Source of the DNA: Haplodiscus bocki
Lineage: Eukaryota
DNA: 64,000 nt
Assembly (NCBI GenBank): GCA_965655095.1
Contig: OZ296649.1
Coordinates: 87,792,001 to 87,856,000 of the forward strand
Direction of reading: 5' to 3'
Both the position numbers and the translations under genes were made by a program. The notes beneath the pieces were generated by a model that made no database searches, was not told the origin of the DNA, and worked only from the letters and a program-made list of their open reading frames with translations. Positions 1 to 53,871 of this stretch are shown piece after piece. Position 1 is the first letter of the stretch. Every line of letters begins with the position of its first letter.

Positions 1-2498
1 TTTAGCACATCTAAACCTCGCAATTGGGTGCTGTTAGGCTCCGGAGGCCTCTCACTAAAGATGTTGAAGGTGTACCAAAAGGTTCAACATGTTTGGCAAG
101 AAAAAAACTGCGTTTTGAGCCAAAATACGTCAAAAAAATGGGTTGTTTGGGGCACTAAGGTCTGCACTACAACGCTTCGGAATTTTACTGTAAGACCCCA
201 ATGATGGTCAAACTCACAGAATAGCCTTCCAATTGGATGTGCAAGATGCTGCGTTTTTAAAACAGGCAACTTTATGCGGAAAAAAATTGCTTTCTGAGCC
301 GGAAAACGTCAAAAAATTGGGTTTTTTGGGGTCCTCAGGTCTGCACTAAAACGATCGGGAATTTTACTGTAAGACCCTGATGATGCTCAAACCCACTGGA
401 TAGCCGCCCAATTGGATTCGCAAGGTGTGGCGCCAAGAAAAGAGAACCTTACAGATAAAAATCGCTTTTTGAGCCAAAAAACTTCGAAAAAAAACTGGTT
501 TTCTAGTTTCTTTAGACATTACCCCAGTGAAACCCTTCGTAAATTCACTGTACTGCTCCGATCGCGCTAAAACTCAGAGGATAGCCACTAATTTATTAGT
601 AGAACGTGTTCCTGCAATAAAAAGGTAAATTACTAATCATTCAACTCGAAGAAATTTGCAAAGAGGAACTTTAGGGCTAAGCCTATTCGCTCCTTAAAAA
701 TGAATCTGCAGGCAAGACCGCAACAACGTCTAAACGTTCTCAAACCCATATATTGAGTAAATATATCCTTTATAAAGATATTCAGGTATCTGCATGCAAA
801 TTTTCAGCTCAAAAACATCATTTTTCGTGACGTACGAAAGCTTCCAATTTGGACAAGTTGGCCCGCTAGGGCCCTTTTGGAAATGCGTGTTTTAGCACAT
901 CTAAACCTCGCAATTGGGTGCTGTTAGGCTCCGGAGGCCTCTCACTAAAGATGTTGAGGGTGTACCAAAGGTTTCAACATGTTTGAGTAGAAAAAACTGC
1001 GTTTTGAGCCAAAATACGTCAGAAAATTGGCTTTTTCGGGGCACTGAGGTATGCACTAGAACGCTTCGAAATTTACTGTAAGACCACAATGATGGTCAAA
1101 CTCACAGGACAGCCTTCCAAAAGGATGCGCAAGGTGATGCGATTTTAAAATAGGCAACTTTATTTCGAAAAAAAAATAGCGTTTTGAGCCGGAAAACGTC
1201 AAAAAAATGATTTTTTTGGGTCCTAAGGTCTGCACTAAGACGCTTCGGAATACTACTGTATGGCTCGAACAATGATTAAACTCGCAAGATAGGCGCCCAA
1301 TTAGTTGCACAAGGTGCATAAAAAAAGGCTACTTTTGTCAGAAAAAAAATACGTTTTGGGGCAAAAAACCTCGAAAAAACGGGTTTTCTGACATTAGCCC
1401 AGTAATATCTTCGTAATTTTGCTGTATTGCTCCGATCGCGCTCAAACTCACAAGATAGCCACTTTTTTGATATTAGAACGTGTTCCTGCAATAAAAAGGT
1501 AAATTACTAATCATACAACTGGGGGAAATTTGCAAAGAGGAACTTTAGTGCTAAGCCGGCTACCTATTCGCTCTTTAAAAATGAATCTGCGGGCAAGACC
1601 GCAACGACGTCTAAACAATCTCAAAACCATAAATTGAGTAAATATATCCTTTATAAAGATATTCAGGTATCTGCATGCAAATTTTCAGCTCAAAAACATC
1701 ATTTTTCGTGACGTACGAAAGCTTCCAATTTGGACAAGTTGGCCCGCTAGGGACCTTTTGGAAATGCGTGTTTTAACACATCTAAACCTCGCAGTTGGGT
1801 GCTGTTAGGCTCCGGATACCTCTCACCAACGATGTTGAAGGTGTACCAAAAATTTCAACATGTTTGAGTAGAAAACTGCGCTTTGAGCCAAAATACGTAA
1901 AAAAAATGGGTTTTTTGGGGCACTCAGATCTGCACTAAAACACCTCGGAATTTTACTGTAAAGCCCCAATGATGGTCAAACTCACAGGACAGTCTCCCAA
2001 TAGGATGCGCAACGTGATGCGATTTTAAAAAAGGCAACTTTATATCGAAAAAAATTGCGTTTTGAGCCGGATAACGTCAAAAAAATGGGTTTTTTTGGGG
2101 TGCTAAGATCTGCACTAAGACGCTTCGGAATTTCACCGTATAACTCCGATGATGCTCAAACTGACAGGATAGCCACCCAAGTGGATGCGCAAGGTGTTGC
2201 AACAACAAAAAAGGCAACATTATGCAGAAAAAAATTGCGTTTTGAGCCAAAAACCGTAAAAAAATGGGTTTTTCAGGGTATTCAGGTCTACACTAAGACG
2301 CTTCGGAATTGCACCGTATTACTCCGATGATGCTCAAACTCACAAGATAGCCAGTCAAGTAGATGCGCAAGGTGTTGCAACAATAAAAAGGCAATTTTAT
2401 GCAGAAAAAAATTGCGTTCTGAGCCAAAAACCGTTAAAAAAATGGGTTTTTTGGGGTAATCAGGTCTACACTAAGACGCTTCGGAATTTCACCGTATT
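1..2498. repeat. Satellite array S1: ~179-bp monomers in ~890-bp higher-order repeats
   Basis: Monomer core AATTTTACTGTAAGACC..GATGATGCTCAAACTCAC recurs at ~181, 360, 541, 1069, 1248, 1948, 2129, 2308. HOR marker TTTAGCACATCTAAACCTCG recurs at 1, 891 and ~1772. Confidence 0.95.
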
Positions 2499-2501
2499 TC
2501 A

Positions 2502-3575
2502 CTCTTTTGTTTAATCATAAGAAAGTACCCTAAAAGTTGTGCCTTATATCAAAATTTGAGGTCAAAATTTTACAAATTCAGCTTACACCGGCTCTCTGAA
2601 TGTCACTCAAAAGGCCGAAAAAAGGTGAAAAAACGGTGTTTCTCAGGCCCGTCGCAGACCTCACTGACTCGCACCAAAGGGCTGAAAACCCACTCCGAAG
2701 ATCTTTGTTCAAAGCCACGCACAAAAAAGGAAGTTTTTGGCCCAAAAGACAGCCCGTCATGTGATTTTAGTTGTCTGAGTGAATAACCCAAGAAAAGGCA
2801 GTCGAAAACAAAGTACAGGTGCTCGTAAACCCATCCTTTTAGGCAACTGTTCCAAAAAAAGCTTCTAACTAGTTGGAACCAACAATCAGCTAGATTCTGA
2901 CACTTTTATTTGATCCTAATTGTTAAACTATGCAAATAATGATGAATTTCATTGAAAAAACACGATTTTTCACACCTTCTTCGTGTCAAGTTAAGGACCT
3001 TCTCATCAAAATCTGGGCTTCCTCAGTACAATTTCAATTTGTTCACACAAAAGTACATACAAAGCGGTGTCCACTCCGTTTTTTTTGACAACCTTCGGGC
3101 TTCTGGTCGAAAAATACGGCTCTCCTGATTTTTTCCAAAAATACACTCAAATATCTTTTGGTGATCGTTTCGGTGCAAAAAACAGCATTTTTTTCGACGC
3201 GCGCAAAATAGATTAAGCCGATCATTCAACCATATAGTAGAGCAAATTTTGACGACTTTTTAATGTCCAAATGCAAAAATTCGAGAAATGGCGCGCTCTT
3301 GAAAAACGCCAAAAAAAGCGATTTTCGCGATTTCTGGCTACTTTGGGACTGCCATATTCGATTTTGATGATAGTTAGGTCTCTTTTGTTTAATTCATGTG
3401 AAAGTCCACCAAAAGTTGTACCTTATGTCAACCTTATGTCAAATTTTCAGGTCAAAATACTAAAAATCAGCTTAGACGGCCCCTTCGAATTTCACTCAAA
3501 ATACCAAAAAAAGGTGAAACAAAGGTGTTTTTCAGGGCAGTCGCAAATCTTACTGAAACATTCCAAGGAGCTCAA
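2502..3575 (+). repeat. Diverged ~180-bp direct repeat pair (about 2502-2690 and 3380-3575)
   Basis: CTCTTTTGTTTAAT..GAAAGT..AAAAGTTGT.CCTTAT.TCAA..AGGTCAAAAT..TCAGCTTA..TCACTCAAAA..AAAAAAGGTGAAA occurs twice, ~880 bp apart. Confidence 0.8.
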
Positions 3576-4660
3576 AAACAACCAAAAGTCTCATCTGCCG
3601 GATGGCTAACGGGTTTTATAGCCTTGAAAGTACTGGTCAACTGTTTGGGCCAAAATTGACACCTGTGAACACTCATTTTGAAAAAACACTCACTTTTTGA
3701 CATTCAAATTGAAATTACTTCTCACATATTTGAGTTACTGCAAAGTAAATCATGTTGTCAAAAACGCTTTCGCAAGTGCTTTTGAACGTTAGGAGAGTGT
3801 TTTTACCGTCAGACAACGACAAAACCCCTTTTTTGTGACTGTGTTTTCGAGGTAGTCCCAAAAACAGCCATTTTAGCCATCTGACTGAAAATGACTTCCC
3901 TCACTCGTTCCAGTTCACCCAGAAGCTTTATTTGCGGTGCCCATCAGAATCCTCCATCATTTGGAGCTGAATTCTTGAGTTGGCAAGTTGCTAAAGTTTT
4001 GACCTATGAAATCTTGGTATACCTCATCGTAAAAAAGTTTAAATGGAATAACTCGATGCACAGTAATGGGGAAGTAGGGCGGTTTTCAGTGACTCAAAAT
4101 ATAGTGGATAGAGATTATTCATGCCAGAAATTAGCACGCTACTGGCAAGAATCGCGAAATGCGGGACCTTCAAATATGGTCAAAAAACACGGTTTTCAGA
4201 AGTAGAGCATTTTTGGGGGTGAAAAAAAAGATATGTTCCACTTGGGTTACCATCATCAAAATTTACCAGCAGGTTCCCCATGGATAGTAATTGCCGGGAA
4301 TGTGCTATTTATTGGTATCCCAAGCTTGAATGAGGAGAAAGAAACGCCGGGAGACATGAAAAAGCGACTTTTGGCGATTTTCCGGACCTTCTCACGACAA
4401 CCGCATGTGAAATAGGGGTCTCAAACTTTGCCAAAAAATACCGCTGCTAGTGGCCATCTTGCGTGCTAAAAACAAAAAGGCTCAACTAAAAGAGAAAAAA
4501 ATCGATTTTTGACTCAAAACTGTTAATCGGATCAAAAAGTTGCTGTTTCCGACCAAAATGTCGGGCGACCGCAATTTTTGAGAAAAAAACATCTGATTTG
4601 AAATCGGTTTTCTTTTCTGGGGTCCTGGGCACCTTTTCAAAGGCTTAACAGAATCAAAAA

Positions 4661-4747
4661 TCCGGTAACCAGTAAATTTAGCACTCAAAAATGTTTTTTT
4701 TCCGGCAACCAAAAATCAATGAAATTATCGTTTGTTTTCCAGTAACC
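4661..4747 (+). promoter_or_regulatory. Three TCCRGYAACC motifs upstream of the structured RNA region; candidate promoter elements
   Basis: TCCGGTAACC 4661-4670, TCCGGCAACC 4701-4710 and TCCAGTAACC 4738-4747 (spacing 40 and 37 bp). Function is inferred from position only. Confidence 0.35.
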
Positions 4748-5080
4748 CCGAGCCGATTTACGACCGGCTGGTCTCTTTGGTTGCTCTTTTTTTTCATTGA
4801 GGACGTTTTGCGCGTCCAGTAGGACGGTTAAAACCAGTTGTAGGCGTTTTGCGAACCGTTTCTGCTTTAGCCACCTAGCCACTACTGTTTGAGTCACTGC
4901 ATGGTGTGCCGAAAAGAACATCTTCGGAGGTTCTCTTTGGCATCACCTAGTGTGTTGTATGTTTGTTTGCGAGGGTGCTCCAGTCTCCTTTTTTCTCTCA
5001 CCTTTTTCCCGTTTTTTCGTTAGTTTCCCTTTCCTTCCCCTGTCGTGTGTTTGCTAGGCGGACTGCAAAAATGCAGAGAA
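4748..5080 (+). other. Structured, ETS-like leader upstream of the 18S-derived RNA
   Basis: Hairpin GGACG-ttttgcg-CGTCC (4801-4817), a long hairpin 4902-4947 capped by a C(UUCG)G tetraloop, and a pyrimidine tract at ~4983-5041. Confidence 0.45.
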
Positions 5081-6122
5081 GATCTGAAAAAGATCCCGCT
5101 GGTGGGGGCTACTTGCACCACCGGTCGCAGCTTGAAATCAAAAAGTTTGATGTTTTATGGTAGAGATGGCCTCATTCTCTTACCTTCTAGGTCAGAGAGT
5201 GATTGCATCTAGACCACAAAGCCTGAAAATCTTTGATGTCAAGCCCCAAAATAACCTTAGTAGGAATAAGCATAGGGCCTACTTTCATAAACTCTCTCTC
5301 AGCGCCGTGGTTGGGGCAGGGAGATTACACGTTTCGGCGTTGAAGCTCCCTGTCGGTCAGGGTATCGGTTACCTGTTTGAGAGTTTATGAGGGTGCGGTG
5401 CAGAGCTTATCTCAGGAGAAATTGGTGCTGTGAGCCAGACACACCCAATTTCATCTGGAGGGCGATGCAACGTTTGGGCCGCGGTATATTCATCCAGAGC
5501 TGCACCTGGGACCTGCCTTGTTCTGCTGTCCCGGCTTGAGCGGCGCTTGTACACTTCCCAGGAACTGAAAGGCGAACTGATTTGTGAAGCATTGATCTAG
5601 CATTCAATATCATAATGCATACTGCTTGTCATAGGAGTCATTGTCAACTGAAAACCAAAACTGTACAAATGCTATTTGAAGTTAAGAGTTCTTGGAAGTG
5701 TATAGGTTAGCTTGGGTTCCCTAGGGTGTTTCGCCATTTCCTCGGAAATGGGTTAACACTGGGCTGTGTGAACAAGTTGATGTAAGTATGGTTGGTGTCT
5801 GGCACAGCTTGCGTTCTGCTCTGCAGAACACCCCCAGTCTGAGGGTCTCCGGAAGGGCTCCGACTTGCCGGGTTAGTCAAGAAGGAGAACGAGGCTTTCT
5901 TCAAATGCAAGCTGTCACCCTAACCTGATGGTTAGCCGCGCAACCTGAGGGAGGGAGACACTCCTTGGTGAGTGGGGCCATACGACATCGTCGTGGGCTG
6001 GCTCTGGCGTAAGCGTGTCTCATACGCTTTTGATGATGAATTCCTAGGACCAAGTGCTAAAGACGGGTCGCGCCCGAACTCACAAAGTGCAATTGCCTAC
6101 GCCTTTTGACGGGGTCTTTTTT
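5081..6122 (+). ncRNA. Highly diverged, shortened (~1.04 kb) 18S/SSU rRNA-derived structured RNA lacking the 3' minor (decoding) domain
   Basis: Collinear matches to remembered eukaryotic 18S: ATCTGaaaaaGATCCcGCtgGTgG 5082-5105 (TATCTGGTTGATCCTGCCAGTAG); ATGGTAGagaTGGCCT 5157-5172; aAGCCTGAaAA 5219-5229; TGGAGGGC..GCCGCGGTA 5456-5486 (h18); GgCGAACT..TGtGAAGCATT 5571-5593; GGTTGGTGtcTGGC 5790-5803; TTGcCgGGTTAgTC 5865-5878; GAACGAGgC 5887-5895; CGCGCaACCTGAgGGAG 5937-5953; CGTCGTG 5989-5995; GCTtTTGAtGAtGAATTCCTAG 6026-6047; GCCtTTTG-AC 6101-6110. Many intact stems with G-U pairs favour the + strand. Ends in T6 at 6117-6122. Confidence 0.75.
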
Positions 6123-6144
6123 GCCCCCAAAAGTGGGAAAAACT

Positions 6145-6186
6145 TCGGTATACCTGGAAAAAATTAACGTCGGTATACCTGGAAAA
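6145..6186 (+). terminator. Twin 17-bp direct repeats just downstream of the T6 run; candidate terminator or protein-binding boxes
   Basis: TCGGTATACCTGGAAAA at 6145-6161 and 6170-6186, each containing the palindrome GGTATACC. Role inferred by analogy to Pol I terminator layout. Confidence 0.4.
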
Positions 6187-7630
6187 CCGAGTTTCGGATC
6201 CCGAAGTTTGATGCTTTTGAAAACAAAGTAAAACTGTAGAAACTCCTCAATTTTTGGAAATCTTTGGAGCCTAGGGATTTGCAGAGTTTGTCTTTTTGCG
6301 ATAGTTGTGGAATGAACAAAAAAAATTAGACAAAAATCAACAAAAATTTTGCAAAAACCACCGCCAATATACGGTTGTGTGGGATCTTTTGCCTAAACTA
6401 ATCTGTAGTATTAGCTTGATTTAAAACTGCTGTTTTTTGGAACTCAGTGTCAACCCAAGGATCGGACATAAATTATTATGGGGCTTCTAAACACTCGTTA
6501 CAACAAAAAAAACTAATTTTGGGAGAAGATTTGAGCGTTTGAACAAGTCTGAATTGCGGGTTTCAGGTCCAACTAAGTAACGTCACTAAAAGCTTTTAAA
6601 ACAAGTGACAGTTCCTAGTTTTTTGGAAATCTTCTGTGCTTGTTCAGGCATTAAAGCTGTCAAAAAGCAATTTGTTTCAAAATCCTACACAAAAAATATT
6701 AAATTCGTGAAAAAACTGCTGAAACCAGCGTTCAAACTCTGTTATCTCGGAAATTTTGCGTTAACTTTTTTAGTACTTTGGAATTACACTAACCAGCTGG
6801 TTTTTTGCTTCCAACGCAAATCCAGAGACTTGAACTAACGTGTAAAGGTGCTTTTTGGTACCCTACAAGAAAAAAATGTATTGATAAAAAAATTTCAACG
6901 TTTGAGCAAGTCTGAATTGCGGGTTTCAGGTCCAACTAAATAAAATCGCTAAAAACTTCTAAAACAAGTGATAACTCCTGGTTTTTTGGAAATCTTCTGT
7001 GCTTATGAATGTATAATAGCTGTCAAAAAGAAACTCGTTGCAAAAAACTTGACAAAACTTATTAGATTCCTGAAAAAACAGCTGAAGCCAGTGTTCAAAC
7101 TCTGTTATCTCGGAACTTTTGCGTTATCTTTTTCAGTACTTTGGAACTTTGGAATTACACTAACCAGCTGGTTTTTTTGCTTCCAACGCAAATCCGGAGA
7201 CTTGAACTAACGTGTAAGGGTGCTTTTTGGTACCCTACAAGAAAAAAAAAGTATTGATAAAAAAATATCAACGTTTGAGCAAGTCTGAATTGCGGGCTAC
7301 AGGTCCAACTAAATAACAACGCTAAAAACTTCTATAACAAGTGATAACTCCTGGTTTTTTGGGAATCTTCTGTGCCTATTAAGGTACAAAAGCTGTCGAA
7401 AAGAAATTCGTTGCAAAATACTTACAAAAAATATTAAATTCGTGAAAAAAAACTGCTGAAGCCAGTGTTCAAACTCTGTTATCTCGGAACTTTTGCGTCA
7501 ATGTTTTCAGTACTTCGGAATTAGGCTAACCAGCTGGTTTTTTGCTTCCAACGCAAGTCCGGAGACTAGAACTAACGTGTGAGGACGCTTTTGGTACCCT
7601 ACAAGAAAAAAGTATTGATTTCAACGTTTC
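6187..7630 (+). repeat. Tandem ~360-bp repeats: three conserved units plus a diverged first unit
   Basis: CGTTTGARCAAGTCTGAATTGCGGG at ~6537, 6899 and 7272. Units share TTCAAACTCTGTTATCTCGGAA and TTTTGGTACCCTACAAGAAAAAA. Confidence 0.9.
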
Positions 7631-7930
7631 AGAATTCAATAAAAAAAATAACTTTTTTGTTTTTTTCCTGCAGTAATTGAGAAAACATAGCTGTGAAAAG
7701 CAAAACGAAGAGAATAGCAGCAAACACGGACAAAAAGAAAAAAGAAGTTTGACTTAGATCAGCGTTCAAATGAGCAAATGAGATTTAATGAAAAAAAAAT
7801 ATGCGTCGAATCTGTTGGAAAATTATGGTGGAAGACATTCAAAAGCAGTGTTGCTTCCTGAGTTTTTGCTTGTCCAGCTTTACTGATCTCCAACTTGTGA
7901 AATCGAAAAACATCTGCACCAGCTATAATC

Positions 7931-31480: not shown

Positions 31481-31502
31481 AATAGAAAAAAACTTAACAG
31501 CA

Positions 31503-35528: not shown

Positions 35529-35550
35529 AATAGAAAAAAACTTAACAGCA

Positions 35551-36524
35551 ATGGTTATCGATTCAGTTGAAGAAACCGAAGCTTTAGAGAATGAAAACAC
35601 CAACAGAGAGCTCGAAAGTAGGAAAGCAAAAGCTTCTTCAACGCCTGGCAAGCAGGCCGGTGGGCCATCAGCTTTTGGCGGTCATTTTCCACAATTATTG
35701 GAGGTTGACTAACTTTTGCTCCACCTGTAGCAACCTGCTTAACAGGTTTCTCACAATCACTTCCGTCATGATTGATGCCAGAACCGTTTAACGGATCGGG
35801 AGATTGTGAGGACTACTTGGGTCAATTTAACATTGCCGCAAATCTGTCGGGCTGGTATCGCCAATGTTCACACAATTAACGACCTCAATATTTTGCGCTC
35901 CGATTGAAAGGCAATGCACTTCATTTTTTTCAACTTTCAGAGGACCACCAACATGACTTCCACATTCTGGTGGATTCTTTCGGTCAAAATTACACCACAA
36001 ACGTAGAAATTTTGAAAGCTCGACCGAAGGCCGCCAGGCAACAACCTGGACACGACGTCGCCACATTTCATTGCAACATTAGCACGTTAGCCCGCCGCGC
36101 TCATCGCGACAACCCGCATTTACTTAAACAAATTGTCGTAACTAGCTTCATTGAAGGCATAAATAACTCTACCCTCCGATCGGAATTGAGAAAGCTGAAA
36201 CCTGAGAACGATGACCATGCCTTGACAAAAGCACTCGAACTCCAGGCGTACCTGGAAATAGAGGGACGAAACCCCAATGGGACTGCCATCGGCAGTTCCC
36301 CTGGTGTGAATCATATGAAAAATCAGTTCCTGATAGCAAAAACAGTTATTTTTGACCAATTTGTCCGGTCGCCCCAAAGAGACACCGATAACGTTCCGAA
36401 GAATCGCAACCGAGAATCACGCGAGAATTCTCGTGGCGGAGAGCGAGACAGAAACGGCTCCATGGACAGAAGCCAGAATGACTCACGAGAGAACAGAAAA
36501 AGCAGATAGTAACTGACACGAGAC
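35551..36524 (+). pseudogene. gag: Truncated Gypsy gag fragment, copy B (less decayed; ORF 35904-36509)
   Basis: LKGNALHFFQLSEDHQHDF..LKARPKAARQQPG..SFIEGINNSTLRSELRKLKP. Ends at the same ACACGAGAC breakpoint as copy A. Confidence 0.8.
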
Positions 36525-36878
36525 TCCGATGATGCTCAAACTGACAGGATAGCCACCCAAGTAGATGCGCAAGGTGTTGCAACAATAAAAAAGGCAACTT
36601 TATGGAGAAAAAAATTGCGTTTTGAGCCAAAAACCGTAAAAAAATGGGTTTTTCGGGGTATTCAGGTCTACACTAAGACGCTTCGGAATTGCACCGTATT
36701 ACTCCGATGGTGCTCAAACTCACAGGATAGCCAGTCAAGTAGATGCGCAAGATGTTGCAACAATGAAAAGGCAGCTTTATGCAGAAAAAAATTGCGTTCT
36801 GAGCCAAAAACCGTTAAAAAAATGGGTTTTTTGGGGTAATCAGGTCTACACTAAGACGCTTCGGAATTTCACCGTATT
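36525..36878. repeat. Satellite array S5 (two monomers)
   Basis: Equivalent to 2145-2498 and 16105-16458. Confidence 0.9.
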
Positions 36879-37543
36879 TCACTCTTTTGTTTAAATCATA
36901 AATTACCCTAAAAGTTGTGCCTTATATCAAAATTTGAGGTCACAATTTTACAAATTCAGCTTACACCGGCTCTCTGAATGTCACTCAATGTACAAAAGCT
37001 GTCAAAAAGAAATTCGTTGCAAAATACTTGACAAAAAGTATTAAATTCGTGAAAAAAAAACAGCTAAAGCCAGTGTTCAAACTCTGTTATCTCGGAACTT
37101 TTGCGTCAACTTTTTCAGAACTTCGGAATTAGTCTAACCAGCTGGTTTTTTGCTTCCAACGCAAGTCCGGAGACTAGAACTAACGTGTGAGGACGCTGTT
37201 GGTACCCTACAAGAAAAAAGTGTATTGATTTCAACGTTTCAGAATTCAATAAAAAACTAACTCTTTTTTTTTGGTTTTTTTCTGCAGTAATTGAGGGAAT
37301 ATAGCTGTGAAAAGCAAAACGAAGAGAATAGCAGCAAACACGGACAAAAAGAAAAATGAAGTTTGACTTAGATTAGCGTTCAAATGAGCAAATGAGATTT
37401 AATGGAAAAAAACATGCGTCGAATCTGTTGGAAAATTATGGTGGAAGACATTCAAAAGCAGTGTTGTTTCCAGAGTTTCTGCTTGTCAAGCTTTACTGAT
37501 CTCCAACTTGTGAAATCGAAAAACATCTGCACCAGCTATAATC

Positions 37544-40500
37544 ATGCCTCGTGAAAACTTCAAAGTTCTTCCCTATACCTCTGAAGAGTACTCCTTCAAC
37601 GAAGTTGATGAGAACGATGAACGCTGCGGTTAGGTCCAATTCCAATCCTTCTCTTCCGCCAATAAAGAGGAAAAGATTCTTTGGATGTTTTAAATTTCAT
37701 TTCCATAAAAGGCAAACTATTTTAAGACCTCTTCAACTCTGAATTAACTGTAATGTTTACCAAAAGAATCACACGAAATGCTGAAATAGCTTCTGAAAAG
37801 AACATTTTTGGTTCTATGGAAATCTTTAGGAGCCCCCCTTGTGGTACCACCCTCAAGGAACATGTCACCCGATGATGCCATCATCGACTCCGAGAGAAGA
37901 TCCAAGCGCGGTCAAAAGAATGTGGAGGAATGGCAATATCTGTACCAAGACCAGGAAGGTTTTGAAAAAGCCTTCATTAGCCAGGAGAAAGGCTATGGAT
38001 TGGTGGCAACGCGCTTCTTTGAGAAGGGCTCCTTTCTATTGTTTTACAGAGGACGACGGATCAGTAGACGCGAAGCTGACTTGAAAATAGCCGTAAGATT
38101 CGAGGAAGCTTTGATTTGATTACTTTCGCAAAGCATATGAATAAAAACTGTTGCAAAAATGATTTTTTTAGGAGGGAAAAAACGAATACATCTATTCAGG
38201 TGAGAAGAGTAATCTTCTCATTGATGCTTCCGATGAGGACTCTGGGCCTGCGCGTTTCATGAACAACGCAAATAAAAAAGCGCACGTGAAGGCTGGGCCA
38301 TATAGAGATGGCGGTTAGTTTCATTTATCTAAATTATTTAAACTAGGAGTAAAAAACGTAAAATTATGTTTACGTTGTAGCTGGAGTTGAACGTGCGTTT
38401 CACAGCATTGCGCGACATAAACAAGGGAGAAGAGTTGGTTTACGACTACAATGGCGTAGGTCTCTTTTGGCGAGTCAAGAACCAAAACAGGGTTTTTTGA
38501 ATAAAATTACTGATTTGAAATCTTTGATGAATTAATCATTCAAATATTCCAGGGATATCAAGCCAAAATATCTGGAAGTGTCCCAACCTGAAACGTAAAT
38601 TTCCCCGTTTTTAAAATTATTAATGAAACATCGCAAGCAGTATCTTTCCAGACTGAACTTTTTCCAAGACTCCTATTCAAAGTACATGCGTCTTTAGTAC
38701 TAAGTAAGTTTTCTCTTGCAGTCGAAATTACGAAAGCAAGTCGAAGTTCAATTCTTCGTGTGTTTTCTCTTCCAGAGCCCAGGCGGTCCGAAAATTGATA
38801 CGCGAAGACGGAGAAAGTTCCCAAGCAGAAAATGAACGCTTTCAAATTTACACTAAGAAGCAATCATGCACAAGAAACCCGTAAGCAAAATACTTTTCCG
38901 GATAAAACAGTATTATAGAGCTGTCATATTCAATACTTTCTGTGTTTTAGGGGTTTTGCAGGACATAACCAACAATGAGAGCGAAAACTTCGTTGAAACT
39001 GTTTACCTTTCTGACAGTTAGACATTTTTTTCTTTGACTGACCTGAAAAAGCAATTTGGTCACGAACGAGATTTTTTCCCCTTTTTAGCAAGTCTGCCGG
39101 AAGACAGTCTCTACAGAGTTCCAGATGAGCCCATGTCGAATGTGTTTTTTTGAAGTACAAGCGGCCATCGAAGGCAAGGACAAACTGATTGCTCAAAGAC
39201 AGTTAAATTCCCAACGGTAACAATCACTCATCTCTTTCCTTGCAAGGCAAAGCATGTAGAGACGCATCCTGATTTGCAGCCTGAAAAACCTCGAGAATGA
39301 ACGTCGCAAGAAAATGAAAGCTAGATCGGAAATGGGTTTTTCGCAACCCGAACCAACAACCGAAAACAATGCCAGAGCCAGGGAGGAAAGCGACTGCGAA
39401 CATTAAGTCACAAAAACAAAATGTTACCTGGGAAAAATTGAAAATTTTAGAAAAAACCAGCACTCAATCGACAGACACACTCCGCCCCAACAACCTGTCA
39501 GCTTCTCTAGGCATAAGTAACCATTTCTGGTAGGCATTTTTGATTATAATGTTGCTAGAGACCAATACGTAAAAACGCCTTTTCTCCAGCGAACCTTCGA
39601 AATCAAAAAAGAGGCACGAGATGTACAGCCCCTTCTTCACAGCGAGCACAGAAGAAGATGAGCCAAAAATTCACAGCAAACGTGGTCAAAAGATGAAGCC
39701 ACGACGAAAACAAGGGAAGTCTTTGCGAGTTTTCAAGAAGAAAAACTCCTGAAACTTACCGTCTCCAAACATAGAAAACAGGTTCTTTCGAGTTTCGTTG
39801 AAAAGTTGATATTTTACTAACAAACCTAAATAACTAAACGGATTTTTCCAGTCCGCATGCAAAAATTACAACCTGCGACGAAGAACCCAAAACGCCAACT
39901 GCTCTGAAACAGCATATAAATCGGTTTGGTGTCTAAATTATCTAACGTAAAATATTCTAAAATTTCTATTTGAGATACAGTTGGTTTTTTTTCACAGACC
40001 GCTTGCTGACGTGACGAATCATCCAGCCCTAGACAAAGCTGCTGTCGATAGCCCGGAGTGAGTTTTTTAAATCATTATATTAAATAATTCCCCTTCTAGC
40101 GACAGTTTGAAGCACTTGCACGATTTTTAAGATATGAGGACTTTGAGAGGGACAGGAGAGAGAAAGTGAAGTCGAAAAAACCTTTGCCAGCTGAACTTCT
40201 TCCAATTCGCCAACTCAGTGAGAGTGAACCCCTTCTTGATTGTGCCGAGTGAGTACTTATATCGACAAACTTCTTTTGATTCAAGCCAGAAGCAACATGA
40301 GTTGAACCAAACCAAAATTTCGTTTCAGTTAGTCGCCGAATCCCAACGTAACTCACTTGACGACAGAAGAATGGAGTGAAATGATGGAGAGGCTGACTTG
40401 CTTGCCAGTTTGGACAGAGAATAGGTTCGTGTGAAACGGAGTTTAACCTCGGAAAAATGAAGCTTTTCATCGGAAAGGCAAGCTGCAAATCTATTGTGCT

Positions 40501-43500
40501 TCTATTTTTTAACGTGCAAGAAGAAAGCAATGCAAGTGGATTCTGAATAATTACAGGAATCGAGCTCAACGGAAAGTGAAATAAGTTCTGGCTGTGACGA
40601 ATTTACAACGGACGTGGACCACAGTCCCTCCGAGCTTGGAAACTCAACCAAAGGCTTGGTCCCTCAACAACAGGGAAAAAGCAAAAAGTATATTGCGATC
40701 GTTTTTGAATGTTTTCACTGCCTAAATTCTTATGTTTCGAAAGTTTATTCTTTGATGGCTAGGAAAAAAAGTAAACATGCTGTACAAATTAAAAAAGAGG
40801 ACTTGCAAAAAAAATTACCGGAAAAATCGATTTCGCAAACAAATATTTTTCGATCGCTAATGAATGTTTTCACTGCATATTTTTTTGTTTTCTGAAACTT
40901 CGTTCTTTGATGCCTAGAAGGAAGACTAAACATCCTGTACAAATTAAGGAAACGGGCTGTCAAAAAAAGCTGAGGGTGAGTATTAAAAACCACAAAATTA
41001 ACGTTTTCATTCTACAAGTTCCCCAAATGATTTCGAAAGTGTTTGTTTCAGTGATTTCTGTTGCCGCATGGTTTGTCACAAAAAAATACACAACAAGGGC
41101 ATTAAGCGCCACGTCCAGAGAAATCAACAGCAAATCTGGAAAAACAACGTTGACGATCTTGTGGTCAAGTTGTCGCTCTTTTTCTCCAGAGAGCAGAGGG
41201 GCAAAAAGTATGTGTGCGCAGTTGAAGACTGCCTGAAAACAACTTCTAGAAAAAAGGAGCACCGATGCCACTTGCAGGACCTTGTGCTGGTCAAAAAGAG
41301 AAGTGACCTGTCTCTGAACATCTCCAATATAATTTTCCCACAACCAATAGACGGTGAGATGCTAAATTGCTTCACTATGTTTTGCAAATTTGGAAGACAA
41401 CAGATGTGTAGAAGACTTAGTTATAATTTTTTTCTTCTGAAACAACAGGACTTTAAAATCGAAATAAATATGTGTTGTTTTCCAGACGCCTCCAATGAGT
41501 TTGGGAAGTTTGCGCAAATTGCCGACTTTAGAAAAATCATTGACGGCTACATTGCCAACCGAACTCAACTCTTCAAGCGCGGTGCTGAACGTTATAACGA
41601 GAAGGCGCTCAACCTGCAGGTCAAGAGGATTAAGGAGTTCATCTTGGCATCGGATGAACTCACCAATGCCTCAGTTTTCCCCGTTTTCTTGGCCAGCCTT
41701 CCAAATGTGCACGCGCCCAAAAGCTGTCAAAACGTAGCCAACAATATCAAAGAGTTCCTGAACTTGGTTGAGCGTTTTGGGTCTGACGGACCAGGAATGA
41801 GGACAGCAGTCGAACCTGAAAGCATTAAGGCACAACTTACCCCCTATAAGCAAACTCTCGATAAACCTGCCCGCCAGTGGCGGAACACCCAAGTCCTGCT
41901 TGATTTTCAAGGAATGCCTTCTCAGACTGAGCTGAAGGAAGTACGATCAAAAGTCATCAACTTGACTGAAACTTTGATAGAAAAGGGCTTGAACAGAGGA
42001 CATTTAGTAGATGAGGACTTTTTGATGCTTCTGAAGGGTTTGGTCTGCCTTGTGGTAATGAGGAACGCATGCAGAGTTTCCTCTGGAATTTACATCAAGA
42101 ACGAGCATTACATGTTTCGTTGTAAAGGCCCACAATGGAAGAACTATAAAAGTCCACTCTGCCCTCCGAACCAGATTGTGAGGAAACCGTAAGATTTTTC
42201 GAACTAACTTTTTGCCATTAATGATATTGAACACCTTGCCACCAGTTGCTTATTGCAAAATCAGTTTTTGGGCAAACTTAGGTCTCGAACACGGGAAATT
42301 GTTTATGGGGGAGTTTTTTTACGAATAGAGACAGTTTTGTGTCAGGGAAAGTCACTGAGCAAACTCAAACGTAACGCAAAATTTGAGCATTTATTCAGTG
42401 ATGAGAAGAAGTGGCAGGCAATTGAACGGTGGACAGAAGAAGGGAAGGAGAGCAATAAAAACTATGACACAGAAGCCCTAACTGTTCTCTCGCTCTCAAC
42501 CGAAGAAGTTGCAATCTTCGACCGCTTCGCAAAACTTAAGAAAGAACTGGGACTGGTACGTTTGAAAAAAAATATTACTTCAATTTTTTCAAAAACCCAG
42601 AAAGGAAGCGGCCTTACAATTCCCTTCAAAAAATTCGATCGAGATCTCGGAAAGCAGTTAAATATTACAATCAGATTTAATTCAACCATCTTCCGAAAGA
42701 AAATGCAGACTCTTTGGAGTCAAAAAGTCCAGCATCCCAAGGACTTGCAGACGATTAATACTGCAATGGGCCAGGGTTGGTGGACGGGTTTGATGCATTA
42801 CACTTTCCAAAACAAATATACTGCCAGTTAATTCGTCTGTCAAACTGTGGAGCTGAACGTGAGTCTTTTTCCTCAGCGTTAGAAAAAAATTAACCAACTG
42901 GTTAAGGTAATTTGAGAAATAAAAAAATATATTTTTTCTAGAATTATTTAATGATTTCTTACATTGTATACTATATTTCCCAAAATATTAAATTAAAATT
43001 TAAAATATAAGAAAGCAAGTAATTTGAAATATATGTTTTAGGACAATGACTATCTGCCGGAGATTGGCGGCCCTCAAACTTCCAGCTTACACAGAACCAT
43101 CACAACTGTAACTTAAAAGCTGACACTATAATTGATTAGCAAATATTCGATTTTTTTTGTGTTCTCCAAAGTAATTATTTTTGTTCCAGAGCTCTGTCGC
43201 ACCTCTTGAAAACTCTTCCGACGACTGTTCCGAAGATCAGTGCAGCAATGGCTCACAAAGTGAAGATCTGATGGTATTGCTTTTGTAAAAGAACAAATGA
43301 AATTTAGTTGAGCTTAAAGCCTTCGATACTACTATATTTTAGCAGGAAGATGAGACAACAGATTTTGGAACCGTACAGTCCACAGATCAAGTGGGTGTGA
43401 TCGACTTTTCTGAAAAGTTTGCTCAAATTTTGGATCAGATATTGAATTTTCTGAACTTTTACACAATTCAACATCATAAATTGCTAACTGCACCAATTCC

Positions 43501-44025
43501 GGATTCAGAAAAGGAATGCTCGGAAAGTTCCGACGAGAGTGAAGAGGTTATACTTCGCTCATTTGATTTTGTTCTCCAGTTGAGTTGACGTCATTGAGAA
43601 TTATATTTTTTCCCAGAAAAAGCCCGCGCCAAAAAAGAGGAGATACTTCGGTGGCTCAAAGCAGAATGTTCAAATGGAGGCCGAAGATACTTTGGTACTG
43701 GTTTTAAATTTCACATTTACTGAAGTAAAATCTTCACTTCTGGCTCATCATGTCTTCAAACTTTTTTGCAGATCAGTGAGTCAAGCGCAGCCCTGGCAAC
43801 TGAGTACTTGAAAAAGAGAGGGAATTGAGGAAGAGAAACAGTGCCCCAATTCCAGGTGAAATGATCGCGATGGTTGTGGACCTCCTCATGAAGGAATTGA
43901 GGAACGTGCACTTTAATCTGGGAGAGATCCACAAAATCTATTTCAGAAACCACAAGTACGAAACACTGAGAAATCAACTAAGACTCCTCAACATTTGGCG
44001 GGAGAGAGGTTACCAGTCCGGTTGA
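37544..44025 (+). pseudogene. SET + tyrosine recombinase locus, copy 3 (best-preserved YR domain)
   Basis: ORF 41068-42192 reads through VDEDFLMLLKGLVCLVVMRNACRVSSG (Arg 42073-42075). ORF 42253-42831 has SNKNYD, STIFRKK (Arg 42694-42696) and AMGQGWWTGLMHY (Tyr 42799-42801). GAA>TAA stop at ~42829. Confidence 0.75.
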
Positions 44026-44549
44026 TTTGTACACGGAAAACTGTGAAACCAAGAAAGAAACGATGATGTTGCCAGCGTATTATTTGAGAATTTTCAATAT
44101 TTTATGAACTTGTCGTATCTTGCTTTGTGATTTGTAAAATTTCATTAATTTATAAACTTGTCGAACTTTGCTTTACCTTTCCCTTGAAACAAAAAAAATG
44201 AGAGCTCAGAAGAGAAAACAGAAAAGAACAGCGAGACAGAGAAGAATAAAAAAAACAATCATTGCATTGCGTTCTTGCTGAGAAAAAAGAAATTGATAAG
44301 GAAGAAACAAAAAAAAACAAAAAAAAAATTCGGGGCCCAGATAGCGTGTGTTCTCGTCGCGGCCCTGGGCATCATAGTTCTCAACAGTGGTGGCAAGACC
44401 GCTATCAATTTTTTCTTGTTTCGCTTTCATCCAGTTTCAATCTCAGGCAACTAACCGTTAAATTTGCACTATGATATAAAGGATTAGACAAGTAATTGTT
44501 CTTCCGTGCCTTCAAAATAGGTGAAGCAAAACTGAAAAGCTCATCTATA

Positions 44550-46760
44550 AGGGAGAAAAATACGTTCTCACCCAAAAACAAACGTGCGAGAAAAAGATTT
44601 TTTTCTTGGGGTTATCAACGATTACTTGACTAAAACCTTTCGTAATTTTGCTGTACAGCTCCGATTAGGCTCAAACACACAGGATAGCCGCTTAATTCAA
44701 CGCACAACGTGAAGGGGTTGCAATGATAAAAAAAAGCAACTTTATAAAAAAAATTTCAGCCAAAAAAATGGGTCCTCAGGTGTGCACTTAAACGCTTCGC
44801 AACTTTACTGTATGACTTCGATGATGCTCAAACTCACAGAATAACCGCCCAATTAGATGCGCAAGGTGTTGCGGCATTAAAAATGGCAACTTTACCAAAA
44901 ACCAATTGCGTTTTGAGCCGGAAAACGTCAAAAAATGGCTTTTTTTTGGGGTTCTCACGTCTGCAATAAAACGCTTCGGAATTTTACTGTAAGACCCCAA
45001 TGATGGTCAAACTCACAGGACAGTCTTCCAAAAGAATGCTCAAGGTGATGCGATTCCAAAAAGGCAACTTTATTTAGAAAAAAATTGCGTTTTGAGCCGG
45101 AAAACGTCAAAAAATGAACCTGCGGGCAAGACCGCAACGACGTCTAAACATTCTCAAAACCACAAACTGAGCAAATATATCCTTTATAAAGATGTTCAGG
45201 TATCTGCATGCAACTTTTCAGCTCAAAAACATCATTTTTTGTGACGTACGAAAACTTCCAGTTTGGACAAGTTGGCCCATTATGGGTCCATTTGCAAATG
45301 CGTGTTTTACCACATCTAAACCTCGCAATTGGGTGCTGTTACGCTCCGGAGACCTCTCACTAAACATGTTGAAGGTGTACCAAAGGGTTCAACATGTTTG
45401 AGTAGAAAAAAATGCGTTTTGAGCCAAAATACGTCAAAAAATGCGTTTTTTGGGGTTCTCAGGTCTGCACTAGAAGGCTTCTGAAACTTACTGCATGACT
45501 TCGATGATGCTCAAACTCACGGGATAGACGCCCAAGTGGATGCGCAAGCTGCTGCGATCTTAAAAAAGGCAACTCTACCGAGAAAAAATTGCGTTTTGAG
45601 CCGGAAAACATCAAAGAATGGGTTTTTTGGGGGTCCTCAAGGCTGCACTTAAACGCTTCGGAAAATTACTGTAAGACCCTGATGATGCTCAAACTCACTG
45701 GATAGCCGCCCAATTGGATTCGCAAGGTGTGGCGACAATAAAAGAGATTAACTCATGAGGGAAAATTGCTTTTTGAGCCAAAAAACTGGTTTTCTGGGGT
45801 CTTCTGACATTACCCCAGTGAAACCCTTCGTAATATGGCTGCACTGATCCGATCGCGCTCAAACCACAAGATAGCCACCAATTTGATAGTAGAACGTGTG
45901 CCAGCAATAAAAAAGGTAACTTACTAATCATTCAACTCGAAAAAACTTGCAAAGAACACTTAAGGGCTAAGCCTGCTACCTATTCGCTGCTTAAAAATGA
46001 ATCAGCGGGCAAGACCGCAACAACGTCTAAACGTTCTCAAAACCATAAATTGAGTAAATGGATCCTTTATAAAGCTGTTCAGGTATCTGCATACAACTTT
46101 TCAGCTCAAAAACATCATTTTTCGTGACGTACGAAAGCTTCCAATTTGGACAAGTTGGCCCATTATGGGTCCTTTTGGAAATGCGTGTTTTAATACACCT
46201 AAGCCTTGCAATCCGGTGCCGTAAAGCTCCGGAGACCTCTCAATAAAGCTGTTGAAGGTGTATCAAAGGTTTCAACAAGTTTGAGTAGAAAAAAAATGCG
46301 TTTTGAGCCAAAATACGTCAAAAAATTGCGTTTTTTGGGGTCCTCAGGTCTGCACTAGAAGGCTTCTGAAATTTACTGTATGACTTCGATGATGCTCAAA
46401 CTCACGGGATAGACGCCCAATTGGATGCGCAAGCTGCTGCGATCTTAAAAAAGGCAACTCTACCGAGAAAAATTGCGTTTTGAGCCGGAAGACATCAAAG
46501 AATGGGTTTTTCGGGGTCCTCCAGTCTGCACTAAAACGCTTCGGAATCTTACTGTAAGACCCTGATGATGCTCAAACTAACTGGATAGCCACCCCATGGT
46601 GACAATAACAGAGATAACCTTAAGAGGAAAAACTGCTTTTTGAGCCCAAAAAACGTCAAAAAAATGGCTTTTGGGTTCCTCACGTCTGCACTAAAACGCA
46701 TCGGATTTTTACTGTATGACTTCCAAGATGCTCAAAATCACAAAAATGCCGTCCACTTGA
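44550..46760. repeat. Satellite array S6
   Basis: Same monomer and HOR spacer motifs. Confidence 0.95.
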
Positions 46761-47944
46761 TTCTAGAAGTTGCAAAATCAATAATTTGACGATGTATGGA
46801 TATAAAAATTACATTTTGGGCACTGGAATACCTGGGAAAGCATAACCTTTTGTTTCTCGACGATGCCTTACGTACTTCCTCATTTTGCGCATTTGTGGAT
46901 ATTTGTCACCTGTGCTACACACTATTGTTCCTTTTCAGCTGTTCAGAGGCCTTCTACTGTGTATTCAGATCAAAACAAGGCTAACCCTGCCTTCCTCTGT
47001 CCTTGTAGCTGTATACAGGTATTCCGGAGTTTTTGGACACTGAAACGGGTAAAGCTCGCATTTTCAGTCATTTCTAACCTTTTACTGTCTTTCTACAGTG
47101 TTTCCTGGCAAAGACAAGGCTAACCCTACCCGTAGATGTGTTTGTAGCCGTTCATAGGTATTCCAGGGTTTTTGGACACTCAAACGGGTATGGCTCGCAT
47201 TTCCATGCATTTTCGATCATTTCTAGCCATTTACCACCTTTCTATGGGTTTTTAGAGGCTAGCCCTAATTTGGGACCTTCTGCTCCAGCCGGCTACTTTT
47301 TCGTTGTCGAAATTTTTATCGTAGCCATAGGGTTATGTGATTTTTGGGTTTGGCTCGATTAGCTGAGCTCGCCCTCGTTTTTTATCTTCGGGAGGTAACT
47401 AGAACCCGATTTCCATCAGGCTACCTTCTCGAGGGTCACGTGCTACCTTTGCGCTTAACGAAAACGTAGCCGAGGGGCCGGCTACCTTTTCGTTCCTTGG
47501 TCGCCCTGGCTCCGGCTACCTTTTCGCTAGTGTGCTGCGAAAAGGTAGCCGGGAGCAGGGCCGTTTCCCAGATCGACTCCAAAATAACAGCATGCTGCCG
47601 TTTCATGCAACGAACAGAAAAAACGCTTGTCTCAGCCATAGTTGGCAGCAGGAGCCCATAGGAAGAAGATCGCGTTAGAATTTTTTGTAAAAATTATTTG
47701 TGGAACTCCAACGGTTTAATTATTCCTTCAGCTTTTTTATTCTTTTATCATCTATTCATGGCCCCTCAAGAAAGGTTAGTTTATTTAATTATTCATGTCT
47801 CAATTATTTAACGTTTAGGCGTTATGTGTAACGCGATAAACATTCGTATGAAGACACCACGACTAAACAACACATTTATGGATAATTGACAAATTTCGTG
47901 TCTATGTACCCTGAGTATTGACTTTCAATTATTTTTTTTCCATC
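46760..47944. mobile_element. Putative element end block, copy C, retaining two ~138-bp internal repeat units where A and B have one
   Basis: CAAGGCTAACCCT..AGGTATTCC..TTTTTGGACACT.AAACGGGTA occurs twice in ~46975-47200. Motif cluster and inverted repeat at 47288-47552. Confidence 0.5.
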
Positions 47945-47966
47945 AATAGAAAAAAACTTAACAGCA

Positions 47967-49360: not shown

Positions 49361-49439
49361 GAGTCTACGCCAGCGGGTCTCCGCGCAGACAACAATTACA
49401 GGAAAGGCCCACAAACAAGTATAACACTTTATGCAGTAG

Positions 49440-53780: not shown

Positions 53781-53871
53781 TGTAACATCACTAGCATACC
53801 CTGACCAATCCTGTTGCTTTAATCAAGGAATCCTCCCTCAGCTAGTCGTTTACGTTTCTATGCTTCGTTTA

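Follow-up and report, generated by a model that had tools for sequence, protein, structure and literature searches.

A satellite-embedded cluster, probably of one Crypton-like lineage, encoding a predicted SET domain joined to a tyrosine recombinase in Haplodiscus bocki

Overview of the locus

The stretch of Haplodiscus bocki DNA analyzed here (64,000 bp, hereafter the window) is probably best described as a satellite-embedded cluster of one Crypton-like lineage, coding for a tyrosine recombinase (YR) and no reverse transcriptase (RT), in which a single gene with short introns joins a SET domain, zinc fingers and the YR (SET–ZnF–YR), and which was multiplied locally. Copy 1 (2498 to ~15020, 12.5 kb) displays the full non-coding architecture (Table 1). 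The module order described in the initial annotation is real and recurs on five further contigs of this assembly (L002-L006) as satellite, spacer, 1.25-kb core, 363-bp repeats, SET–ZnF–YR gene, tail and 178-bp satellite. Left module (spacer, core and repeats), gene and satellite are found together in L002-L006, whereas a more distant element, L007, has no left module. The YR proteins of the five contigs share a mutual identity of only 35-78%.

Table 1. Features of the window, with positions, strand and basis of assignment.
Feature	Position	Strand	Basis or remark
Satellite, 177-180-bp monomer	1-2497, 15018-16457, 24051-30420, 32480-34468, 36523-36877, 44629-46745		TRF, repeat families
Left satellite: 894-bp units, then 2-3.5 "left-type" monomers	1-2497	+	TRF, repeat families, phase map
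Once-only block of 4.9 kb, closing in 363-bp repeats	2498-7620
Spacer A/B, non-coding, internal ~355-bp subrepeat	2498-4877	+	75-92% identity to L002-L006, same position
Highly conserved non-coding core, 1.25 kb	4878-6122	+
Tandem 363-bp repeats, directly preceding the gene	6536-7611	+	2.9 copies (2-7 in paralogues)
Internal deletion of 4.8 kb, common to copies 2 and 3	about 2612-7383
First ~113 bp of spacer A fused to the last 363-bp repeat	16458-16569	+	Alignment
SET/YR copies 1, 2 and 3	7381-15405, 16569-23794, 36987-45016		97% identity
SET–ZnF–YR gene, copy 1, pseudogene	8250-14430	+	23-bp insertion in long exon
Copy 1 SET exons	8280-8474, 8569-8691, 8787-8882	+
SET–ZnF–YR gene, copy 2, pseudogene	17441-23604	+
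SET–ZnF–YR gene, copy 3, best kept	37862-44022	+	tblastn to P0030, P0032, P0024; intron ends
Copy 3 SET exons	37862-38092, 38181-38303, 38399-38494	+	Short GT-AG introns between
Copy 3 open exon, 396 codons: zinc fingers, core-binding domain, Arg I	41002-42189	+
Copy 3 open exon: Arg II and Tyr	42208-42828	+
Tail, 3' non-coding, grading into degenerate satellite monomers from phase ~58-69	44100-44770	+
Longest satellite array	24051-30420	+	One 15/16 copy of end-block 16-mer per 894-bp unit
Tandem duplication of 4,048 bp, satellite and end block	28762-32619 vs 32810-36663
End-block repeats	30627-32480, 34675-36524, 47091-48948		97-98% identity
End block proper, copy 1	30420-31377	+	Conserved edge of satellite array
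End block proper, copies 2 and 3	34468-35425; about 46745-47841
End-block copy 1 motif cluster	30825-31088
Perfect 16-bp inverted repeat, 9-bp spacer, copy 1	31048-31088
Truncated gag fragments, duplicated along with the satellite	31378-32480, 35426-36524
Ty3/Gypsy retroelement	47842-55270	+	Pfam, ORFs
Gypsy gag start	47968
RVT_1	50714-
RT_RNaseH_2	50935-51258
Integrase C-terminus	52960-53241
Coiled-coil ORF in Gypsy region	54264-55268

The SET–ZnF–YR gene

Three SET/YR copies are present, as initially claimed. Their SET and YR pieces align in order (tblastn) to full-length relatives and belong, as exons, to a single gene whose introns are short and of GT-AG type. The relatives P0030, P0032 and P0033 show the same fusion as single proteins of 1,094-1,121 aa, in which PF00856 matches the N-terminal part (E 1e-10 to 1e-12) and the YR motifs lie C-terminally; intact relatives consist of a single, intronless ORF, and in L001-L007 the SET domain lies upstream of the YR. 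The earlier proposal of a YR element with a SET domain is thus borne out, as the element exists, is recurrent and has both domains fused in one protein in relatives.

Concerning the SET domain, predicted to be histone-methyltransferase-like, PF00856 matches the window's SET exon 1 alone with an E-value of 0.008. The GYG and YDY motifs are kept and NN replaces NH (RFMNN); the corresponding His is Asp in the relatives and Asn in the window, a change that, judged from the alignments, is family-wide and not decay. The proposed identity with SETD8/PR-Set7 (KMT5A), and hence H4K20me1 writing, is not retained, since among PDB sequences KMT2A (E 1.2e-4) and SETD8 (E 2.3e-4) are tied, both weak, making the domain indistinguishable by sequence from a KMT2A-type SET.

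In the recombinase part, Arg I (RNxxRxS), Arg II (WRK/FRK) and Tyr (HY) are kept in all members. Two residues count against our preferred reading: the HxxR-box His is absent family-wide, with Asn or Thr three residues before Arg II, and the His III that precedes the catalytic Tyr is Gln in all three window copies, His III (GHS/GHG) being present in the relatives and in paralogues L002 and L003. The fold was examined on an AlphaFold model of relative P0030 (residues 560-1010, mean pLDDT 63.7, catalytic half poorly modelled), for which VIA-align returned XerH (Z 9.6), XerA (8.8), topoisomerase IB (8.7; rmsd 3.7, 152 residues) and Cre (8.5), the best 25 rows being tyrosine recombinases or type IB topoisomerases without exception (25/25), and Foldseek gave Flp, XerH and Cre as best rows with weak E-values (0.18-1). 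This model agrees with a two-domain tyrosine recombinase fold, composed of a helical core-binding and a catalytic domain.

Neither RT nor DDE transposase was detected in the unit, where 42 ORFs of 60 aa or more, counted over the two strands, gave SET as the only Pfam match, and the YR appears to be its sole mobility enzyme. The unit is accordingly regarded as a Crypton-like DNA element because it has no reverse transcriptase. The YR parts have no Pfam match, DUF3504 (CryptonA) included, so that their sequence does not support placement in CryptonA/F/S/I (DUF3504/DUF3435 type); the nearest named family by protein features is DUF3435 (Starship/CryptonF type), a feature-level neighbour with a score of only 0.79-0.81.

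Conservation of the copies and local multiplication

All recognized exons are open in copy 3 only, whose C-terminal pieces extend to 44022; copy 2 is interrupted by stops in SET exon 1 and in the C-terminal part, and its long exon is frameshifted. That two of three window copies are pseudogenes counts against the preferred reading. The three copies are ~97% identical including the flanking satellite, which points to local duplication and not to three transpositions; the tandem amplification described earlier stands in the number of copies.

These data bear on an improbable reading in which the whole is an old, dead composite of heterochromatin, spread only by segmental duplication and unequal crossing-over in satellite DNA, with recombinase and SET now idle. 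The copies duplicated with their flanks at 97% identity, the 4,048-bp duplication of satellite and end block, the frameshifts or stops of copies 1 and 2 and the His-to-Gln change in all three fit with it, but copy 3 keeps every recognized exon open, including that of 396 codons, the copies show 100% identity in their SET exons, with the family-wide motifs kept, at least six deeply diverged families with intact splice-site patterns occur in one genome, and intact full-length relatives exist.

The left module and its history

The once-only block that forms the left module was largely lost from copies 2 and 3 by a shared internal deletion; contigs built from reads show the deletion junction as a loose end. 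Its core is 93-99% identical in L002, L003, L005 and L006, and the JGI contig L010 carries a core 90.5% identical to the window's. Indels between relatives are not multiples of three. The initial annotation took this region for an 18S-derived RNA unit mimicking rRNA, which finds no support in Rfam: neither SSU nor any other rRNA was matched at gathering threshold (window), at E<=1 (2400-7700) or at E<=10 (4700-6250, where no Rfam family of any kind was hit), nor in the cleaner paralogue L003. The structured RNA that it also proposed is backed by weak signals only, since fold z-scores reach at best -2.3 and -2.4, in two 200-nt windows, and covariation is weak or absent.

Comparison of the modules reveals discordant histories. 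L003 and L006 share 99% identity in the core and 92% in spacer B, and 39% in the YR, while the window and L003 share 94%, 86% and 78%, respectively; by these identities the history of the core disagrees with that of the recombinase. The discordance probably reflects exchange by recombination within shared tandem repeats. The left module is younger than the gene it accompanies and discordant with it, which counts against the preferred reading: it could be a landing pad and not part of the element.

A rather unlikely alternative develops this last point, restricting the mobile part to the ~7-kb SET–YR stretch that starts where the 363-bp repeats stop and reaches to the tail. Spacer, core and repeats, as well as satellite and end block, would make up a repeated unit of their own, belonging to another element or to host heterochromatin, into which several diverged SET–YR families would insert site-specifically, as R1/R2, Pokey and Dada do in multicopy genes. 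It would account for the conflict between left-module and YR trees, for left-module similarity between paralogues reaching no further than the 363-bp array (on this account, to its end in every pair; otherwise to its end or a point inside it), and for L007 without a left module. The relatives L001 and L009 point the same way, as they measure 7.4-8 kb and lie specifically within a tandem repeat. However, a gene-free left module, i.e. an empty site, is seen in 0/6 loci, the tail grades into satellite with no sharp end, and homologous exchange in shared repeats gives the same pattern. Furthermore, L002 and L006 are 72% alike in the SET region and 35% in YR fragments, hence shuffling is not limited to one boundary.

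For the window lineage, neither an empty site nor a circle junction turned up, nor did exact ends of the element, which counts against our preferred reading of a locally multiplied Crypton-like lineage. The available runs behaved like DNA contigs and gave no evidence of expression, which likewise counts against it.

Satellite, end blocks and the 16-bp motif

The long satellite arrays have a period of ~894 bp, made of three monomers and a ~365-bp non-monomer insert. According to the phase map, the left satellite stops at monomer phase 96, which marks the spacer start, and the satellite-to-spacer junction is identical in window copies 1-3 and also kept in L002 (alignment). The tail is kept beside satellite in L003 and L004. 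Across the unit the satellite phase breaks off at 96 and is taken up again at 58-69, in monomers that are degenerate; this discontinuity does not bear out a clean insertion into an array and counts against the preferred reading.

In each end block the 16-mer CCGGCTACCTTTTCGC is present as two perfectly inverted copies 9 bp apart, preceded upstream by five degenerate copies; judged by its arrangement, this inverted repeat is lox-like. Every 894-bp satellite unit contains one 15/16 copy, and 29 matches vs 0.35 expected (shuffles) substantiate the claimed motif link between satellite and end block. No satellite copy of the 16-mer stands beside any of the three units, and this also counts against the preferred reading. 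The left ~950 bp of the end block are conserved together with the satellite junction; in L004, junction and first ~500 bp are ~80% identical (alignment), the last 280 bp are inverted, L004 having a motif of its own, and homology ends at 47841.

The right half of the end blocks is Ty3/Gypsy gag, continued in the third copy into RT, RNase H and integrase (Pfam, ORFs), with RVT_1, RT_RNaseH_2 (E 4e-16) and Integrase_p58_C (E 5e-8) in this order after the gag-like ORF; this half is not part of the SET–YR unit. No LTR pair was found within the window, where 46.4-49 kb is not repeated downstream, so that the Gypsy copy is truncated. Of the three end blocks with inverted repeat annotated initially, the blocks, their left ~950 bp and the 16-bp repeat hold, but their right half is retroelement.

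The initial model saw a single giant selfish unit that runs from the satellite through to the end block, equipped with recombinase, H4K20 writer, nucleosome-length satellite and rRNA-mimic RNA, imitating rDNA or building its own chromatin domain. The recurrent module order, the strongly conserved core and the motif joining satellite to end block speak for it, and satellite, upstream non-coding modules and the left part of the end block are indeed linked in order to the SET–YR gene on several other contigs. Taken whole it is hardly credible, as the core has no rRNA similarity at any threshold and weak folding and covariation signals, the SETD8 assignment is not specific and Gypsy gag makes up half of the end block; the separate module histories show that a single coherent unit is too simple.

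Proposed mechanism

In the preferred reading, the three copies would have been multiplied locally, inside the satellite, either through unequal exchange or by segmental duplication. The element may move as a circle for whose integration the YR uses tandem repeats, in this case the 178-bp/894-bp satellite, as suggested by likeness to the intronless relatives between (CTA)n microsatellite arrays. Of these relatives, L001, L008 and L009 have (CTA)n on both sides, and the ends of the relatives are 73-83% identical vs 67% for the coding part. With its inverted pair in the end block and one half-site per 894-bp satellite unit, the 16-bp motif is a putative binding and crossover site of the ZnF–YR protein. 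The SET domain might modify chromatin where the element integrates or nearby, and the conserved core may serve the unit in cis, as DNA or as RNA, and be no rRNA derivative.

A stronger version, which we consider doubtful, takes the SET–ZnF–YR lineage as satellite-dwelling, using the 16-bp site for integration, excision or rearrangement, with SET marking chromatin and the core as an essential new ncRNA or cis element. If true, the element would both build and inhabit its own satellite/heterochromatin domain, and the core would be exchanged between otherwise deeply diverged elements.

Comparison with known systems

DIRS/Ngaro YR retrotransposons share with the window unit a tyrosine recombinase in a eukaryotic repeat, but have RT, RNase H and inverted or split direct repeats, none of which the unit contains. 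In primates, SETMAR is a SET domain fused to a mariner transposase, likewise SET and transposon enzyme in one polypeptide; it is a single domesticated host gene derived from a captured DDE transposon, whereas the fusion described here constitutes the gene of a YR element family that is multi-copy and diversifying. Transposon-borne satellites, such as the Helitron/Helentron-associated arrays of bivalves, are similar in having a tandem array tied to a mobile element, with which it spreads. They involve another enzyme class, and the window satellite unit bears a half-site of the inverted-repeat motif at the array edge.

From eukaryotes, YRs are known that bear C2H2 and SAM-like domains and have tandem repeats as their integration target (PMC10871703); these repeat-targeting YRs of endogenous nimaviruses, likened to ours by description only, reside in giant viral genomes and have no SET. 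For the active CryptonF-1_cRei, integration at a short site common to element end and target was observed directly, as were Crypton-mediated inversions (PMC9977147). We found no published description of the SET–YR combination, and Kojima & Jurka 2011 list a SET/C2H2 domain for no Crypton group (PMC3212892). Cryptons (CryptonA/I of animals; Goodwin 2003; PMC3212892) resemble the window unit in having the YR as only enzyme and no RT, no evident long terminal or inverted repeats, possible introns and multi-copy, diverged families. In contrast to them, the window unit adds an N-terminal SET and C2H2 fingers, has no conserved HxxR His, is associated with tandem repeats (the 178/894-bp satellite in the window, (CTA)n in relatives) and carries a large conserved non-coding module upstream.

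Organization of the window

The window harbors a Crypton-like element whose tyrosine recombinase (YR) is fused to a SET domain. The element is associated with tandem repeats and, here, is embedded in its satellite and has been duplicated with it. The initial annotation was largely right in what it observed and partly right in how this was interpreted. Tandem amplification had been proposed, and three SET/YR copies and three end blocks are indeed seen. Self-comparison shows that the duplicated segments take in flanking satellite (e.g. 16103-23794 versus 36523-44218, and 28762-32619 versus 32810-36663), hence the triple copy number in the window is due to local duplication. One and the same deletion, of about 2612-7383, is present in copies 2 and 3 and joins the initial ~113 bp of spacer to the last 363-bp repeat. 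The long satellite arrays display a period of ~894 bp, made up of three 178-bp monomers and a ~365-bp non-monomer insert.

Coordinates of the features identified in the window
Feature	Position	Basis or detail
177-180-bp satellite	1-2497, 15018-16457, 24051-30420, 32480-34468, 36523-36877, 44629-46745	TRF, repeat families, self-comparison
Once-only 4.9-kb block	2498-7620	ends in 363-bp repeats at 6536-7611
SET/YR unit, three copies, 97% identity	7381-15405, 16569-23794, 36987-45016	self-comparison
SET domain of copy 3, three pieces in differing frames	37892-38086, 38181-38303, 38399-38494	
End blocks, three, 97-98% identity	30627-32480, 34675-36524, 47091-48948	self-comparison
16-mer CCGGCTACCTTTTCGC, perfect inverted pair with 9-bp spacer	31048-31088, 35096-35136, 47512-47552	in end blocks

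At all three left junctions the satellite halts at monomer phase 96, and it restarts at phase 58-69 with degenerate monomers. These phases mismatch across the unit and therefore leave no signature of a clean insertion into a satellite monomer, a reading that was rejected.

The SET–YR gene

Neither of the ORFs at 41002-42189 and 42208-42828 matches a Pfam family, but they align to the relative proteins P0024 (738 aa) and P0030, P0032 and P0033 (1,094-1,121 aa). In the latter three an N-terminal SET domain (PF00856, E 1e-10 to 1e-12) is followed by an acidic linker, C2H2-type fingers and the recombinase, which carries the motifs RNxxRxS, NTNxWRK and HIGHSxxxxxxHY. The YR part yields neither a Pfam match nor a PDB sequence match, and sequence search with the window YR exon as query gives matches limited to fragments of the same assembly and P0024. 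Nearly all of the closest structures to a model of P0030:560-1010, which is moderately confident only (mean pLDDT 63.7), belong to the tyrosine recombinases or the type IB topoisomerases, with Flp, XerH and Cre in the top Foldseek rows and VIA-align Z values of 9.6 for XerH, 8.8 for XerA, 8.7 for topoisomerase IB and 8.5 for Cre.

The gaps between the three SET pieces are ~85-95 bp long, start with GTAAGA or GTTAGT and end with a pyrimidine run plus AG, while the ORFs of six paralogues end at one common point past the Arg I box, where GTAAGA comes next. Judged by these signals, both the gaps and the break after the Arg I box are predicted introns, so that the "SET" and "YR" loci form a single gene of about 6.2 kb. 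No match to a reverse transcriptase or a DDE transposase was found among the ORFs of the unit, hence it is a Crypton-like class II element, and not a DIRS or Ngaro.

Every recognised exon is open in copy 3; copy 1 has a 23-bp insertion within the long exon, and copy 2 stops and a frameshift. The conserved His preceding the catalytic Tyr is Gln in copies 1-3 but is kept in the paralogues L002 and L003. Concerning the SET domain, the NH motif reads ND in the relatives and NN in the window, with GYG and YDY retained, which is a family trait rather than decay. Its best sequence matches among solved structures are KMT2A and SETD8, in a near tie and both weak, and therefore a SETD8-like assignment is not established.

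Recurrence of the module order

YR fragments are present on further contigs of one ENA assembly, ERZ26859043. Five contigs (L002-L006) share the order spacer A, spacer B, core, "post" segment, 363-bp repeats (2-7 copies), SET and YR, and in four of the five the YR is followed by the tail and then the 178-bp satellite. The satellite-to-spacer junction is kept in L002, the tail-to-satellite junction in L003 and L004, and, by alignment, the satellite-to-end-block junction in L004. The non-coding modules are absent from L007, a more distant element of ERZ26859043, as well as from the relatives L001, L008 and L009 of other samples. The module order first noticed in the window is thus genuine and has been inherited within a single sub-lineage.

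Two of these contigs show additional features. L004:1-7600 is a rearranged tandem pair, in which a truncated SET–YR copy joins spacer B directly and a second, complete gene comes after; most of the core (window 5227-5989) is deleted, hence the core can be lost. In L005:13600-20690 a Polinton/Maverick-like gene set adjoins the SET–YR unit; among its products are a packaging ATPase of the Pox_A32 type (14074-14799) and a capsid-like protein of the double-jelly-roll kind (16875-18167).

The conserved non-coding core

The core (4878-6122) shows 93-95% identity between the window and L002, L003, L005 and L006, reaching 95-100% within 5175-5324 and 5617-5915, and the spacers flanking it show 75-92%. 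L010, a JGI metagenome contig, also carries this core, with 363-bp repeats after it. L003 and L006 share 99% identity in the core and 92% in spacer B, but their YR fragments are only 39% identical; between the window and L003 the corresponding values are 94%, 86% and 78%. High similarity of the left module ends within the 363-bp array or at its end. The histories of left module and YR disagree, hence left modules were exchanged among elements, or elements joined left modules independently.

It is its conservation that indicates that the core matters. A coding function was rejected, as there is no ORF of at least 120 aa and the copies differ by indels of 1, 4, 6 and 8 nt. An 18S-derived, rRNA-mimicking RNA had been suggested for this segment, but even at E<=10 no Rfam family, SSU rRNA among them, gives anything other than chance matches to the core (a 22-nt TMV pseudoknot match, and sRNA, miRNA and snoRNA matches far below gathering scores), and an rRNA origin was discarded. 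A structured RNA was rejected on weak folding energy and a lack of covariation, the covariation term giving the structure no support: fold z-scores (200-nt windows, + strand) average about -1.2 with minima of -2.3 and -2.4, only slightly better than shuffles, and RNAalifold on five core copies, too alike for a fair test, gives 4 compensatory pairs out of 459. A guide RNA was likewise rejected, since no significant complementarity to satellite, end block, 363-bp repeats or tail was found, the best match being 15/16 nt (E 0.37).

The sequencing runs that contain the window stretch, all from two samples of one study, behave as genomic DNA and gave no evidence of transcripts. An exact core copy has a depth of ~36 versus summed depths of 300-700, on contigs of unknown kind, hence the core is multi-copy.

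End blocks

From gag (47968) onward the third end block extends through reverse transcriptase and RNase H to the integrase C-terminus, and the first two break off inside gag, where the satellite resumes. What had been described as one end block with an inverted repeat therefore holds for its left ~950 bp, with the conserved satellite junction and the inverted repeat, whereas the right half is an unrelated Gypsy fragment. Reading the left ~950 bp as the Gypsy LTR was rejected, because no second copy lies downstream, because L004, where these ~950 bp are conserved, has the same satellite junction (about 80% identity from the last satellite monomer to ~500 bp past the junction) without gag-pol behind it, and because homology to L004 stops at 47841, shortly before the Gypsy part.

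A motif linking satellite and end block had been noted and is borne out: the 16-mer occurs in both, with 29 matches versus 0.35 expected. Five degenerate copies lie upstream of the inverted pair, and each 894-bp satellite unit has one 15/16 copy, whose flanks are otherwise unrelated. At the corresponding place L004 carries another motif, GGCGTGATTWTCG, in three copies, and the 280 bp on the right-hand side of the palindrome have the opposite orientation. The whole is laid out like a lox/FRT-type site and its accessory sites, which we infer could be functional.

The junctions between gag fragment and satellite at 32480 and 36524 lie at monomer phase ~98, 2-3 bp from phase 96, and may represent a preferred breakpoint or a coincidence. 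Downstream of the Gypsy integrase, a 335-aa coiled-coil ORF (54264-55268), with a weak DUF4618 match only, may be env-like. Ser/Pro-rich ORFs are located at 53096-53782 and 57629-58242; over 52000-60000 the GC skew lies far below zero (-0.16 to -0.26), and GC content rises at 56-58 kb.

Relatives, tandem repeats and known systems

In the microsatellite-bounded lineage (L001, L008 and L009) element ends are 73-83% identical versus 67% for the coding part. The L001 element is bounded by trinucleotide arrays at about 6094-6233 and 13631-13774. L009, an 8,031-bp contig with a single intact 1,121-aa ORF, has tandem repeats of 63, 40 and 32 bp 3' of the ORF and terminal (ACT)n and (CTA)n arrays. L008:625-11285 hosts two different SET–YR elements head to tail, with proteins 48% identical and almost no microsatellite between them, terminating in (CTA)59; it looks as if one element integrated at the end of the other. 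Two further genes were noted in L001, at 20537-22209 (-) and 1102-3283 (-): a second, different recombinase of Crypton-like type that has C2H2 fingers and the canonical SGHS...Y box, and, separately, a 454-aa protein with a canonical NHSC SET domain, upstream of a zinc-finger ORF. More than one family may thus pair SET with a recombinase. The SET–YR family looks widespread and unannotated; as a lead only, its feature-level neighbours include several Atlas clusters of chordate and mollusc SET proteins, ~1,000-1,300 aa long.

No description of a SET domain with a Crypton or tyrosine recombinase was found in the searchable literature, where reviews mention the terms separately only, and to our knowledge few transposons encode a chromatin-modifying domain. 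The SET–recombinase fusion suggests that the element could modify chromatin where it enters or lives. Its tie to tandem repeats, microsatellite in one lineage and the 178/894-bp satellite here, connects a site-specific recombinase, in a concrete way that is open to testing, with satellite birth, spread and rearrangement. The 1.25-kb core evolves far more slowly than the accompanying protein and appears to be swapped among families, and is therefore a candidate functional element of a kind undescribed for Cryptons. Concerning known systems, active Cryptons integrate at a short site common to element end and target and cause inversions (PMC9977147), and, among endogenous nimaviruses, YRs with C2H2 fingers integrate into tandem repeats (PMC10871703).
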